From Adineta vaga (lineage: Eukaryota > Animalia > Rotifera): a stretch of DNA of 64,000 nucleotides. The notes beneath the pieces are model-generated. The model worked only from the letters and a program-made list of their open reading frames with translations, did not search any database and had not been told where the DNA came from. The position numbers and the translations under genes were made by a program. The stretch covers positions 4,216,001-4,280,000 of the forward strand of contig CP075494.1 in the NCBI GenBank assembly GCA_021613535.1, given 5' to 3'. This document shows positions 6,244 through 57,252 of this stretch, piece after piece. Within the stretch, counting starts at the first letter, position 1, and each line of letters starts with the position of its first letter.

Positions 6244-7401
6244 TAAAAGATATTCTATTATTTTCGATTCGATTGTAACTCATTTGAAAAACTATCTACT
6301 TTTATTAGCGAGGTTAAATATTCAACTAATTTAGTCCTTATGTAGGTTGTGTCATTTCTGAACACGATAATTTCGGATCAACATCAGATCGTCGATACAG
6401 ATATAATGTAAGGATATCCAGACTGAATGTTATTGAACGAAGTATAACAAGGGGATAAATATAAAATACTAAATTACGTGCAATAAGTTAAAACGATAGA
6501 AATATCCAGTCATCTGGAAAGATAAGAAAAGATGTCTGCGTATGTATGTATATCCTATTCAACTTACAGATACCATTAATTGAAGACCATGTGCTCTAGT
6601 CAATGTACAAATGAATGCTTGTTCTTTTGATAATATGACATAAAGTAGATGGAGCTGTAATATTTTTCGATGAATTATTTACATGAATATAACCACGCCA
6701 CAAGAGAACAACTCTTTTCTTAGTATACATTGTGCAATTGCAATGGACGATTCGTCAGTCATATTGTATTCGAAATAAATGACAGATATCGATGTCTCTT
6801 TTCTCTCCTTGACGTTTTTCTCCGAAAAAAAAAATGGAAAACTAATTACTTGTCTTTCTGCTTTGGTTTTGAAGAAAGATGAATAATTCATATGGAGAGG
6901 AACTGATCTGTGTGCTTACCATTTCTCTTTTTATGATGTACTCAAAACGTTTTTCATTATTCATGCTCTCACTGCAATCATTCTGTATAAACATACACTC
7001 ATCGTCTACGTATGTCATCGAAGAAAAAAACCACGTATAAGAATTGAAAGTGTCCGTTGCCTTTACTAATGTCGTCATACCAAAATTCGTCGAAAAATTC
7101 ATCTGACGCAGTCGACTGAATGTTGTATGTTTTCTTTTGCTAAAAGCATTAAAAAAATGCTAAAGAGTAAGCGATTTTTCCAAGTTTGCAGTGAGAAATT
7201 TATCGACTATAAATGGTATGGAATAATCAGCGTCGACAGTCACCATAATATTATTCTTTCTTCCGAATTCTTTCCGTTCTTCAATACTTCACACGCTTGT
7301 TTTGTGTTTGAAGTAACAACTCATTTTGAGTTCTGTAACTTTTAAATTGACAGAATCGTCGATACTCAATATTCTTTTGAAAAAAGTTGGTCTGATATCT
7401 G

Positions 7402-34523: not shown

Positions 34524-35478
34524 ATGGCTGCACTAAGTTTTAATAAAATGACCAAACGTAATGAATTGAATTATACAGATGCTTCATCCATAAATCGTTT
34601 ATCACGAGATAGATATGCAACTATTGCCGAAGATACTCTGAATAGATTTCAAACTGATTCAAATCGATCATATGGCAATCAACGTAGTAATTTACAAGAT
34701 AATGTCCGTTATTCGATTGATAATACGATTGTGTATAGAGAGAATGATTTAGAAAGACCAAATCAAATTCAATCGTCTGCATCGTCACCGATCTATGAAG
34801 TTCGTCATTGTACAACTTTACAAGCGGCTCAATCATTAGTAAACGAAGTTGATGATGAAAATCGTATTGGAATATTGAATTTTGCATCAGCAAAAAATCC
34901 TGGTGGTGGTTTTCTCAAAGGTTCAAATGCTCAAGAAGAATCAATAGCAAGAACATCGTCACTCTATTTAACACTTTCTCAAAATCGAATATTTCCTCAA
35001 TTTTATGGTTTTCATCGACAAGAAAAAAATGGACTTTATTCTCATCGAATCATCTATTCACCACGAATTACAGTTATCAAAGTAACGAGGAAATTAGCTC
35101 ACCATTCTTTAATATATTCGTTTTTCTACATAGGATGATAATGGTAAGTTATTATCTTCACCGTATCATATCGGGATAGTTACATGTGCCGCTCCAAATG
35201 CAAGTATTTGCTCTGCCGATGTTGAATTAGTTCGACAGACAATGAGAGAACGAATTGAACATTTATTAACTGTATTTAAAATACATCATCATGATATTAT
35301 TGTCTTAGGAGCATTTGGTTGTGGTGTATTTAGAAATGATCCATTGGAAGTTGCTACGACTTTTCGAGAACATTTACAATCGGAAAAATTTCGAAATTGT
35401 TTTAGTCGAATTATTTTTGCAATTTTTGATGTAGAGATGTGTCGAATATTCGAACGAGTATTCAATAGTAATGAATAA
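34524..35478 (+). CDS. TIGR02452/DUF2263 microbial-type poly(ADP-ribose) glycohydrolase (macrodomain); intron 35082-35133
   Basis: LNFASAKNPGGGFLKGSNAQEESIAR (GGG-x6-QEE catalytic loop), IYSP, VTCAAPN, LGAFGCGVFRND. Confidence 0.9.
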
Positions 35479-51400: not shown

Positions 51401-51626
51401 AACACATCATGTGTGTAAAGTTGAAAAAGAATAAAACTGGATGGAATAAAATAATATGGAGAATAAATGTGAAAGTGTATGGCTATAGTTATTCTAGTAA
51501 AATATATAAAGCAATATTTTACAACGTTTTAAGATCGTTTTTATTTTTCGTATTAGCAAAAGAAAAGATCATATACTACGTAGTAGGCAAATTCTCATTT
51601 ATATATAAAGTCAATGCATATGAATA

Positions 51627-54165
51627 TTAAAGCATCATGTCTTCTTCAATGATCTTAATATCTTTGCCTGTGATTGCTGATTCCACTAAAACCTAAAATA
51701 AAATATTCAGAACTATCAAAAGAAGATTTTAGTTTGAGAATCTATTCACTTTTCTTGATGGTAAACATGGAAGAATATCTTTCAATGAAACTAACAATAC
51801 CGGATCGATCACTTTTGGATCTTTTGAATCTAAAATTCATGAATAACGCTTCATTCATGAATCTAAAGTTGAAGATATTTTACCAAGAATAAAACTAAAG
51901 ATCAATCCAACAATAATAGTAATCAAAGTACCAATACATATAAACCAAAGTGGTGATATTGAAAACAAAGAAACCAATGCATTCGATCTATATTATATAG
52001 AAATACTCATTTCATCTTCCTTTCTCACATTTTATTACTTTATTTCTGCAGATGTTGTTGTTGAATTAGTAGCATTAATGGAAGGAAAGCATTCATCAAT
52101 CGAAGTAGGTAATCGTCCTCCTTGTTTATTGGGTGGTATGGGCGTAAATATTGAACCAAAGAGTAGAAATAATTGAAAGATTAAACAAACAAAAAAAGCT
52201 ACGAATACACTCTAAAAATATTTCATAAGATTATTAGAAAAGAAAAGAAAAGACATCTCATTTGTTGTTCTATTTACTCGACTTTTAACTCGTGAGGTAA
52301 ATAATCCAAGAATATAGATTCCAAGAATTGGAGCTGCAAATACACCAAAGATTTGAATTATTATCTAAACAAGAATTTAATATCGATAATTCAGATAACA
52401 GAAAACTTCAAAGAACGAACGAACGAACAGTGATTATATTGCTTTGCATAAACGATACCAAAAATGCCATCAGTACCGTTAAACATCCAATGCACACCGC
52501 TATACCGTCAAACATAGAGAATTAAAAACAAAACAAAACGAAATAAATTTACTCACATAAAATTTTCGAAAGAAAAACTTGTCGTTCATTAGTGATCAAT
52601 TCTTTCTTTGTTAATCTTTTATACATATCTTCAAGAATAACAGTTGCCATACTATTCACTCCACTGGAAAATGTACTCAATGTTGCACTTAATATACAAG
52701 CAATAAAAAGACCTGTTAGACCAGGAAATCTTCCTAATGTTTCAATTACAAACAATGGATACATCTAAAAATCAGATATTATTTTCCATTCTAATCTTCA
52801 TAGTTCCATCTTACTTGATCTGGTCGAGAAATTTTCTTCGATCGAAGAGGATCACATTGACTATATTTCGCATAGAGTAAACATCCTACACATAAGCAAA
52901 GCATTTGCATTGTAACAAACATCACATAATTAGTCCAAGCAACTCTTTGAGCAGATTTTATATCTTTAACACACATATATCTTTGTGCTTGAGTTTGAAT
53001 ACATGCATATTGTGCTGTACTTGAAAATATCACACCAATAAATATACTCCAAAATGTATATCGAATCGATAGATCAAAACTTGCACTAAAAGAGATTTGA
53101 TAATTAAATTGAAAATCTGATTCATGTGATAATTTTACACAGCAAATTGTAACCGATTTCCATTGCTAACTATTTCAAAGACTTTGGATACTCCACCAAG
53201 ATCAATAAAACCTTGAATTCAATTAACAACACTTATATTTCTGTCTTTCTTTCTTTCCTATAAATCTCTACCGAAAATAATGGACAAAATTAAACCAATA
53301 AACATAATTGATGCTTGAATAACATCAGTCCAAATGACTGCTTTCATTCCTCCCTTGAATATTTTATTTTCGAAATAGAATCTGTTTTTTAATTTAAAAA
53401 AGAAACATTTCTCTTACAATACTTGTATAAATTGTACAGATGACTCCACATAATCCAACTGATATCCAAATATTTAATCCAGTTACTTGACTTAAAGCTA
53501 TACTTGGTCCATATAGAATAGTTGCCATTGAAAGAATCTATATATCCTCTATCAAAATCACGAAAACAAATCGTTAGATTTCTACTTACAGTAACTAGAA
53601 GAAAACTACATGTAACCAAAATACGAATTGTTAATGAAAAACGTTGTTCAAGATACTATAAAATCATTGGAAAATATTTTCCATTCCTCTGAGAAGGAAA
53701 ATAACTTTACATACAGCATAAATACTTGCATTTCCAACATAATGAAATTTTGGTATAAAAAATTTCATTGTAAAATAAGTTCCAATAAACCAGGGAATTA
53801 CTTTTTTTGTTTGAAAAGAAACGAATAAGTAAAGATGAGAATATCTTTTTTTCATATGAAATCTTACTGCAATAAACAAGCATTGATCCGAAATAATAAA
53901 ATTCTACAGGCATCCCAAGTATTGATGCCGCTGATGTTAAACTTGCTAATAAACTCATTGCTGTTGGCAGAATTTTCATTCGGCCATCAGCAAGAAGAAA
54001 TTCTTTTGTAGATTTTTGTTTTGATCGAATTAAACCTTGATAAATTCCAATTCCACATGAGAAAACTAAAATTTCATTTCATTAAAAAGAAAACATTCGA
54101 TATATTGAAGAAGAATTACCTAATAGTAAAACAAAAATCGTATAATCAATCCAACCGAGATACAT
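51627..54165 (-). CDS. SLC5 sodium:solute symporter, NIS/SMCT/SMVT (SLC5A5/8/12/6) clade; multi-exon
   Basis: WIDYTIFVLLL, EFLLADGRMKILPTAMSLLAS, YLEQRF, GGMKAVIWTDVIQ, QTQAQRY, CDPL, PDQ, PGLTGLFIACILSATLSTFSSGVNSMATVILED. Confidence 0.9.
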
Positions 54166-54320
54166 TGAGAATTTATTTCGAATAAAACCTTTTCTTCTTT
54201 TTATTTTTGTTTTATTATCCTTCGCATTGATGACATTGCAATAATGACGTTGTCTCTTCACATGATAATGATATCAAAGATTAACATACAGAATGAGAAA
54301 GAAAAATCAAAAAAATTTAT

Positions 54321-54403
54321 TTCTATTTTAAAAGAGAGACAAGATCAATTTTGTATCTTTGGTCAGAAATCCAATTTCAATACAAAATATCATGGAAATA
54401 GAA
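54321..54403 (-). promoter_or_regulatory. Type II SECIS element in the 3' UTR of the deiodinase-like gene
   Basis: Minus strand reads TTCTATTT-cc-ATGAT-ATTTTGTAT-tg-AAA-TTGG-atttctga-CCAA-ag-ATACAAAAT-TGAT-...-AAATAGAA. It has helix I, the UGAU/UGAU core, a perfect 9-bp helix II, an AAA bulge and an apical mini-helix; AATAAA follows. Confidence 0.85.
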
Positions 54404-54419
54404 AATAAAAATAAAAATT

Positions 54420-55412
54420 TTAATTTTGATGAAGAACATTCGTTTTTAAGAAATAATCGACGGATGGAATCGAATATCCTGTTGGACCATTTTGACCTTG
54501 ATAAAGAATTTTTTTATCGTATAAAACATAAAGTTTTTCTGGCCATCCACGAAATATATGATTCGTATGATCATTCATTGTATCAGAATAAATTGATATT
54601 TGATCACTTTGATTAATTCCAGTTAATTCTACAAGAGTTTCAATTGCATCAATTCGATCTTGTATATCTCGATGATTTGCAATAAAACTATAATTTGGTC
54701 CATCAAATTTCCATCCATCTGAAGCATGTGCTTCACGAATATAGATTATTATAAAATCAATAGGCGAATTGTTCTTTTGATGATATTGTGCAAGTTCAAT
54801 AAAAGATTTTAAACTTGCAAGAAATGGAGGTCATGTACAACTACCGAAATTAACAACAAGATAACGTCCATTTTTCATTAATGAACGTAAACTAATAATT
54901 TCAATATTTTCATTATTATTTTTAGTCAATAAATTAATATTTTCAGTTAGAACAGGAATTAATTTTGCTGTTTCTGGTACTGGTTGACCAGGTGAAGTGA
55001 GACTTGCTGGAAGTGTTCGAGATAGTCGAATACGTTCACGTTCTAAATTCCAATAAAAGATCCAAAATTGTAATCGTAATGCAGAACGAACAGCTAAAGA
55101 TGGTGGACATGTCTGTGCCTAAAATAACATAGAAATCTATTCATGTTGTAGGCTTTACAAAGAGCAAAAAATATATAGACATACGGTAACAGCAGCACCC
55201 TGAATAAATTCATTTGGCATTCGATGTTCATCATTATTTCTATCTTGTTCAGCAAGGTTTTTTGCATTTTTAATCCATTCTTTTTCTTGAAACGTTATCA
55301 CAATCCAAAGACAATGTAAAATCATCATTACAGGATTGAGTATCATTCGTTTCATTGTTAAAAAAATTTCAATTATCTCATTTTTTAATCGAACAAACCT
55401 TTCGTCCCACAT
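54420..55412 (-). CDS. Iodothyronine deiodinase-like selenoprotein (Sec UGA at 54831-54833); exons 55412-55185 and 55118-54420, 308 aa
   Basis: Manual translation gives RYLVVNFGSCT-U-PPFLA...IIYIREAHASDGW...NHRDIQDRIDA...DTMND...GWPERLYVL...YQGQNGPTGY, with a hydrophobic N-terminal segment and a downstream SECIS. Confidence 0.92.
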
Positions 55413-56029
55413 ATTTTTCAATTGATAATAATTTTATATAAAATTTACGCATTTATATAAGTATCAACTGATAAAAGAACAATATTTATTTTATATCAAT
55501 GCACTTTTTTTTCTTCTTCATTACATCTAGCAATCATTATTGCCTCGTGCGCAGGTATATACAACCTTATCGAAATAGTCAAATGTATGATTTATAAACC
55601 TCATGTCGATGATGCACATTAGATCACTTATCAGTAGTATTTTTTTTTCTTTTCGTCCTTCTTACGTTAAAGAAGCTGCTACGTCATGATGAAACATATA
55701 TTATTCTTAGCTGTTTACCACACAATTCTAAAAATATAAAGCGAAGAAAATAGATGCGAATATGATACAAATCAGTCAACAATTCTATCGATAATTGATC
55801 AAACTTAACTCTATGACAAGACAATGACTATACCATAAATAAATTTTGCACTTATACATACAGATGACTCATACGACAGAACGAGTGGGAAACAAATGAT
55901 GCAATGTTTACTCTTTTCGCAATGTGTCATGAGCTAGTTTGTTTTTATAAAAACAGCAATGGATATCTGAAAAACAAACCATAAAAAATTTGTTTTTAGT
56001 TTCGATTATACCCGTAAGAAAAAGTAGTC

Positions 56030-57252
56030 ATGGATAATTTGATGCCCGAGCTGTATGAAAATTTAATGTCATTATGTTCAAGAAATATTGGATTTTATTT
56101 CAAAGATAGTGAACTTGATTCCATAAAATATCGTGTATTTAATTATCGTCTTTGTTCCTATGAACAATTTCATAATTTTCCATCAGCTTTAAATTGTCGT
56201 GGAATACTATTCAATATTACAGATCCAGAAAATATTCAACTTGTTAGTTTACCACCAGAAAAATTCTTTAATTATGAAGAAGGAAATGGTTTAAAAATTC
56301 ATCCACTAGGAAAATTCGGTGTGCAAATGGAAAAACTTGATGGATCATTGATATCAACTTATTTACATAAAGGAGAAGTTCGTTTAAAATCAAAAACAGC
56401 ATTAGGATCATCACAAGCAACTGAAGCTATGACGTTATTAACAGGTAAAGATACATTCTTTTTAACTTCGCATTTCATTGAATAGAATCATTTCTTCTAG
56501 GAAAATATCTTGACGAAGTAAAACAAATTGTTTGTGATAATAAAACAGTTAATTTTGAATTGACATCACCTACAAATCGAATTATTTTATATTATAATGA
56601 ATCAAAACTACGAATTCTTTCAATTCGTTGTCATTTAACTGGTGATACATTATTTGGTGATCGACTTATTCAATATCTCAAAGAAAAACAATTTTCAACT
56701 ATGATTGAAAATGTTGTGTCTTTCAAACAAGTATCTGGTGGTGTATCACATGAAAGATTTGTTGACGATATTAGAAATGAAACAGAAGGAGAAGGATATG
56801 TAGTGGAAATTATTAGTTCAGATAAGAAATGTTATTTGATTAAAATTAAAAATCATAAATATTTATTACTTCATCATACAAAATCTAGCTGTACATCAGC
56901 TAAATATTTGTGTCAATGTGTAATTAATGAACAAACCGATGATATAAGAGCCTTGTTTATTGATGAAAATGCAACTTTACAACGAATAACAGATATGGAA
57001 AACAAAGTGAGACCAGTATATAATCAATTAGTTCATACTGTCGAATCATTCTATGAAGAAAATAAAGGTCTATCAAGAAAAGATTATGCAATCAAAATTA
57101 GTAATATAAAAGATTTGAAAATTTATATGCCATTACTTATGAATTTATATGGAGGAAAAGAAGTTGATTTTAAAAAATTTGCTGTCGATCGTATGAAAGA
57201 TATTTTCGATATTACTGAAGATACGAACATAGATATCGATGAAAATCTATAA
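56030..57252 (+). CDS. T4 RNA ligase 1 (Rnl1)-like RNA ligase; intron 56445-56500, 388 aa
   Basis: ALNCRGILF, PPEKFFNYEE, motif I EKLDGSL, NFELTSPTNRI, EGYVV, IKIKN, and C-terminal HHTKSS...TDDIRALF...RKDYA...MNLY. Confidence 0.88.

Follow-up and report, generated by a model that had tools for sequence, protein, structure and literature searches.

The window, a 64,000-nt stretch of the Adineta vaga genome, contains on its minus strand a real and expressed two-exon gene in which an in-frame UGA is recoded. Coding exon 1 (55185–55412) is an open frame of 76 codons with its ATG at 55412, while coding exon 2 (54420–55118), defined by its translation and by the gapless cover of RNA contigs, holds 232 codons and the TAA at 54422–54420. 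They are separated by a 66-nt, phase 0 intron with GT..AG ends (55119–55184), the removal of which is recorded by a joint at 55117/55184 (cut +1) in three RNA contigs, which also sets the end of the first exon. Within exon 2, the minus-strand sequence is VVNFGSCT-TGA-PPF (TGA at 54833–54831), and the frame then continues for exactly 136 sense codons, through IREAHASDGW and WPEKLYV, before reaching the TAA. An initial annotation of this DNA had described NFGSCT-TGA-PPF followed by about 136 in-frame codons, with EAHxSDGW and PERLYV as later motifs. The active-site context, the length and the first of these motifs (present as EAHASDGW) are all borne out, but the last was misread, as the window gene has PEKLYV, and it is most of the orthologues that have PERLYV.

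A mechanical list of open reading frames breaks the gene in two at the TGA, with the standard-code frame ending at 54831. On the evidence of the translation, and of the position of this codon in orthologous loci, the TGA is instead a selenocysteine codon (54831–54833), lying within SCT-U-PPF and specifying residue 172 of a 308-residue product. Near the other end of the protein, residues 23–41 (55290–55346) constitute the best 19-residue Kyte–Doolittle window (mean 2.05), and are predicted to form an N-terminal transmembrane helix. This hydrophobic segment is kept among orthologues, and, if the prediction is correct, it would match the single N-terminal anchor of deiodinases.

Transcript and neighbouring genes

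The transcript was reconstructed from contigs of three runs (X1, X3 and X5) in two studies; these contigs extend from 54287 or 54338 to 55117, skip the intron, and resume from 55184 to 55408 or 55461. These runs were labelled as RNA by guess, and what marks them as transcripts is that the intron is gone, that a poly(A) tail is present and that the flanks of the gene are uncovered; the DNA run X15 crosses the locus colinearly with the genome, and has no splice joint. The X5 contig stops at 54287 and then carries 15 untemplated T (plus strand), representing a poly(A) tail that starts 29 nt past an AATAAA signal read in the sequence at 54321–54316. This delimits a 3′ UTR of 133 nt (54287–54419). 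At the opposite end, the 5′ UTR covers at least 55413–55461, with the X1 contig reaching up to 55461 and the X3 contig up to 55446. Outside the deiodinase gene, runs X1, X3 and X5 cover nothing except for a separate, low-depth X3 contig at 53783–54156, on the next gene.

Translation is taken to start at 55412 because residues ahead of the second Met are conserved in the first exons of the orthologues. By the same conservation, the end coordinate of 55412 that had initially been given for the gene coincides with its true start codon. An upstream open reading frame of 24 codons and a TGA (55376–55452, minus strand) starts at 55452 and runs past the main ATG (55412), within the span of the X1 contig.

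The next gene on the same strand is a multi-exon SLC5-family symporter gene (51600–54171). Its likely ATG is near 54171, approximately 116 nt past the deiodinase poly(A) site, and its first intron (54066–54119) is seen in the X3 RNA contig. One of its exons matches SMVT, SMCT1 and NIS about equally, with E values from 3e-10 to 5e-9, and therefore NIS cannot be specified for this gene. The pairing of the deiodinase and SLC5 genes as a conserved unit was considered and rejected, with their adjacency kept in one (L045) of the six orthologous loci that had enough flanking sequence. A plus-strand open reading frame at 56030–56485 also adjoins the deiodinase gene.

Conservation of the UGA, the SECIS element and the decoding machinery

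The exons, and the pieces of the gene before and after the TGA, were each searched separately. With the post-TGA piece as query, a word-index protein search returned 34 relatives at 56–79% identity, all of which are gene calls of 96–192 residues from metagenome or environmental assemblies. DNA was compared from eight of these loci (L042–L049), and in six of the eight the gene call begins past the TGA, while in L047 it begins six codons before a Cys codon. Invertebrates are well known to possess deiodinase selenoprotein genes, and the splitting of such genes by gene callers is routine.

The in-frame VVNFGSCT-TGA-PP and a SECIS element are both kept in six intact loci (L042, L043, L045, L046, L048 and L049). 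At L047, the Sec codon is replaced by TGT (Cys, positions 1693–1695), and no SECIS was found in the 183 nt past its stop codon (2101–2286). The joint loss of UGA and SECIS in the Cys member of a Sec/Cys pair is the classical hallmark of a Sec codon that is translated, and this orthologue set provides a clean, textbook example. The remaining locus, L044, has an intact TGA and SECIS, but its frame is shifted by 1 nt right after the PP codons when compared with L049 (2480–2520); this may be an assembly error, in a contig with 5x coverage, or the mark of a pseudogene.

The ratio dN/dS, calculated against the window gene, is 0.17–0.35 past the TGA and 0.19–0.43 before it, showing that purifying selection acts equally on the reading frame upstream and downstream of the UGA. 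Of the six orthologues compared, four have a post-TGA frame of exactly 136 codons, and the other two have frames of 135 and 138. Two lineages, L042/L043 and L044/L049, come from a single ENA sample, and have 68% and 60% amino-acid identity, respectively, to the window gene past the TGA. As the window genome has a single copy, a duplicate could have been lost here, or several species could have been sampled.

The 3′ UTR contains a type II SECIS element (54340–54397, minus strand), identified by its motif pattern, its fold, the Rfam SECIS_1 model, a model built from paralogues, and an alignment of orthologues. It comprises AUGA at 54393–54390, a helix II of approximately 10 bp, AAA at 54377–54375 (12 nt from the AUGA), a helix III of 4 bp (54374–54371 with 54362–54359) beneath an apical loop of 8 nt, and UGAU at 54347–54344; the minimum-free-energy fold has an extra lower stem, and the element has a G+C content of 26–28%. 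The initial annotation had correctly assigned this element to type II, but had placed its start 16 nt past the TAA, whereas the AUGA lies 26 nt past the TAA, and the lower stem begins approximately 5–16 nt past it. The whole element is within the 3′ UTR of the mature mRNA, which ends past the SECIS at the 54287 poly(A) site.

A pattern match alone is weak evidence for such an element, because in A+T-rich DNA the loose SECIS pattern yields around one chance match for every 10 kb of each strand, although the chance of a match inside the 133-nt UTR is roughly 1–2%. One match elsewhere, at 35012–35053 on the minus strand, has 11 of 12 helix pairs, but was rejected as a chance occurrence, as it is inside a plus-strand open reading frame (34524–35138) and has no Rfam SECIS match. 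This candidate serves as a negative control for the pattern. The window also has a further pattern match at 7278–7324 on the minus strand.

Searches with structural models recovered the element at modest scores. Applied to 116 nt, Rfam SECIS_1 gave 20.3 bits (E 0.062), below the gathering score of 35, with the AUGA, AAA and UGAU all in register; an Rfam search of the 1.5 kb from 54000 to 55500, with E values of up to 10 allowed, returned no SECIS match. A covariance model, R1, was then constructed from the SECIS elements of five paralogues, a narrow set of related sequences from which the window element was left out. The paralogues L020 and L022 were also omitted, the MAFFT alignment (A1) of seven paralogue elements being structurally inconsistent. 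With its filters off, R1 ranks the window SECIS first in 128 kb (both strands of the 64-kb window), at 19.4 bits (E 0.031) against 16.0 bits for the next best match; with default filters, it misses the window SECIS, and likewise the L020 and L022 candidates.

The same element is present in seven orthologous 3′ UTRs, including that of the frame-shifted L044. In the alignment of the orthologous elements, standard pairs make up 94.9% of the pair cells, compared with 37–48% when the partners are slid. Two pairs have changed on both sides (from G-C to A-U), and three have changed by wobble only, this covariation being modest because the element is highly conserved.

Components for decoding such an element are encoded elsewhere in the assembly, which totals 100.8 Mb in six contigs at approximately 30% G+C. 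The genome has one tRNA-Sec with a TCA anticodon (66.7 bits), a homologue of SBP2 (E 3.8e-47 to 7zjw_B), eEFSec domain 4 (95.6 bits) with matches at two loci, SepSecS (300 bits) and two SelD loci; for PSTK there is a weak candidate only, at 49 bits, which is under the cut-off. The second match to eEFSec domain 4, L030 (C6:8076000–8076350), has one TGA and two TAA codons inside it, and may be a pseudogene or interrupted by introns. Five of the 21 long open frames in the window are closed by TGA, which is therefore otherwise a stop codon here. Following established eukaryotic Sec decoding, SBP2 would bind the SECIS, and bring in eEFSec together with Sec-tRNA(Sec) where the ribosome meets the UGA.

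Family membership and active site

The deiodinase domain spans 54444–54890 on the minus strand, where it matches positions 95–234 of PF00837 (T4_deiodinase) with 121.9 bits when read through the one TGA. The post-TGA piece alone reaches 94.5 bits (E 7.8e-27), and both scores exceed the curated cut-off of 27 bits. This piece also matches the catalytic domain of mouse Dio3 (4tr3; E 6.1e-18), with 45 of 128 aligned residues identical (approximately 35%), as well as Dio2 (9h48; E 1.4e-14). The catalytic domain sits mostly downstream of the TGA. The sequence NFGSCT-TGA-PPF also fits the family's active-site motif, S-C/A-T-U-P-P/S-F, whose catalytic residue is Sec or Cys. When the pre-Sec part of exon 2 was searched alone, nothing significant was found in the PDB, and the best Pfam match had an E value of only 0.24.

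The proton-relay residues of Dio3 have been described (PMC11592359), as has the clamp for the substrate carboxylate, which is Arg275 in Dio3 and Lys241 in Dio2 (PMC11592359). In the alignment to 4tr3, for which Dio3 numbering is the chain numbering plus 113, the equivalents of Dio3 Tyr197, Glu200, His202, Trp207 and His219 are conserved, and those of Ser167 and Thr169 are present in the SCTU motif. The equivalent of the clamp residue is Asn in the window gene, and N, P, S or E among orthologues; the equivalent of Dio3 Cys239 is Ile. With the relay conserved and the clamp replaced, the catalytic apparatus is therefore complete, and the substrate pocket different. The change to the clamp bears on substrate choice, rather than on family membership.

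The 308-residue product would combine one N-terminal membrane helix with a catalytic domain that probably adopts a thioredoxin fold. Judging from the residues conserved with Dio3 and Dio2, its selenolate would reductively take the halogen (iodine) off an aromatic substrate, and the conserved Ser/Thr/Tyr/Glu/His/His relay would aid this dehalogenation.

A six-frame profile search of the genome, which reads through stops, identified nine PF00837 loci. All have an active-site TGA in xGSxxUPP, and all nine have a SECIS-like hairpin 30–160 nt past the stop codon. The eight other deiodinase-family genes (L020–L027, distributed over C2, C3, C4 and C5) are similar to the window gene in having the PF00837 domain, the active-site TGA and the hairpin past the stop, but are only 26–28% identical to it, score 46–70 bits against PF00837 compared with 122 bits for the window gene, and have the motifs AGSxT/S-U-PPF and IAEAHARDQWP, whereas the vertebrate-type motifs are found in the window gene only. 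The predicted N-terminal membrane helix is likewise exclusive to the window gene within this genome's family. As the eight other members are divergent in both motif and score, the window gene is therefore the only copy found of the vertebrate-like subfamily. L020 and L022 are near-identical copies on contig 3, oppositely oriented and approximately 20 kb from each other.

Interpretation and comparison with known deiodinases

The window gene is best explained as a functional gene for a selenoprotein of the iodothyronine-deiodinase family, a reading to which we assign a probability of approximately 0.9. It is very improbable that the TGA is instead a true stop codon, leaving a pseudogene or a truncated protein of 171 residues, and making the downstream frame a relic. 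The standard-code frame does end at 54831, and ORF and gene callers agree in ending it there, but six intact orthologues share the TGA at this codon, and a seventh has Cys in its place; the frame past the TGA is without decay, at a dN/dS of 0.17–0.35; most of the catalytic domain lies beyond it; and a conserved SECIS is accompanied by complete Sec machinery in the genome. Slightly less credible still is the near-cognate decoding of the UGA as Cys or Trp, with the hairpin being a chance structure. The SECIS scoring under the Rfam threshold would be expected of such a structure, as would the loose pattern yielding chance matches around once per 10 kb, exemplified by that at 35012–35053. Yet seven orthologous 3′ UTRs carry the hairpin, in which compensatory changes have occurred, and the one locus with a Cys codon is also the one that lacks it; the hairpin is the window's best match for an independently built model, and such a hairpin accompanies all nine of the family loci, in a genome with a dedicated tRNA-Sec and SBP2.

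The conserved catalytic residues suggest that the selenoprotein would be an active dehalogenase. Its natural substrate could be something other than a thyronine, given that Asn replaces the basic carboxylate-clamp residue. It is unlikely, but deserving of serious consideration, that this genuine selenoprotein is no thyroid-hormone-like dehalogenase, and acts on another substrate or as a peroxiredoxin-like selenol oxidoreductase. The substitution of Asn for Dio3 Arg275 / Dio2 Lys241, at a site that varies among orthologues, is consistent with such an activity. We know of no thyroid system in rotifers. These animals are also unmentioned in the review PMC10083991, and the deiodinase fold itself is described as thioredoxin/peroxiredoxin-like in structural papers. 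Nevertheless, the full set of deiodinase-specific motifs is kept (SCTUPPF, YIxEAHxSDGW and the second His), and the deiodinase-family enzymes of an ascidian, a scallop and amphioxus have been tested and do deiodinate, as summarised in PMC10083991.

A far more speculative proposal, which we consider improbable, is that bdelloids keep one vertebrate-type, membrane-anchored deiodinase beside eight divergent members, and that it metabolises an iodinated signalling or dietary compound, in this genome together with the adjoining SLC5 (NIS/SMCT/SMVT-clade) symporter. If true, this would represent a thyroid-hormone-like or iodine-salvage pathway in Gnathifera, and the loss of the carboxylate clamp would suggest that the substrate is neither T4 nor T3.

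As a functional selenoprotein gene, the locus should be annotated as encoding one 308-residue protein, and the database calls for its relatives should be regarded as fragments, most of which start past the UGA. The initial annotation had anticipated such truncation, which is evident in all 34 database relatives (96–192 residues), and in the six of eight fetched calls that start past the stop. Its other main claims also withstood scrutiny: membership of the deiodinase family (PF00837 at E 7.8e-27 past the TGA and 121.9 bits when read through, with mouse Dio3 at E 6.1e-18), and a recoded UGA at the catalytic position, which is kept in orthologues or is Cys in the one locus without a SECIS. The checks it had proposed gave concordant results, with tRNA-Sec, SBP2, eEFSec, SepSecS and SelD all present, the UGA kept in orthologues without downstream decay, and the mRNA extending beyond the SECIS. 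More broadly, the full Sec-decoding apparatus of a bdelloid rotifer serves a family of nine deiodinase genes, and the vertebrate-type deiodinase subfamily now reaches the rotifers, which do not appear in the searched reviews of thyroid-like signalling in invertebrates. The known workings of selenoproteins and deiodinases are unchanged by the window gene.

Within the literature that could be searched, no description of a rotifer deiodinase or a rotifer selenoproteome was found. Elsewhere among animals, a published table lists 11 deiodinase (DI) selenoprotein genes under Trichoplax, and its next three columns, Lottia and Capitella among them, have counts of 4, 12 and 9 (PMC3473315). The window gene is less hidden than the initial annotation implied, such invertebrate DI families being documented (PMC3473315). 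The family in A. vaga, with its nine loci, resembles these in being multi-copy and Sec-containing in a non-vertebrate animal.

Relative to vertebrate DIO1-3, the window gene is approximately 35% identical over the post-Sec domain, whereas the pre-Sec linker is not recognisably similar, and the equivalents of Arg275/Lys241 and Cys239 are Asn and Ile, respectively. The position of the Sec is nevertheless close, at residue 172 in the window gene and 170 in Dio3. In common with DIO1-3, the window gene has the PF00837 domain, the FGSCT-U-PPF context and the Tyr/Glu/His/Trp/His relay, alongside a single N-terminal membrane helix (predicted here), a UGA-encoded Sec and a SECIS in the 3′ UTR.
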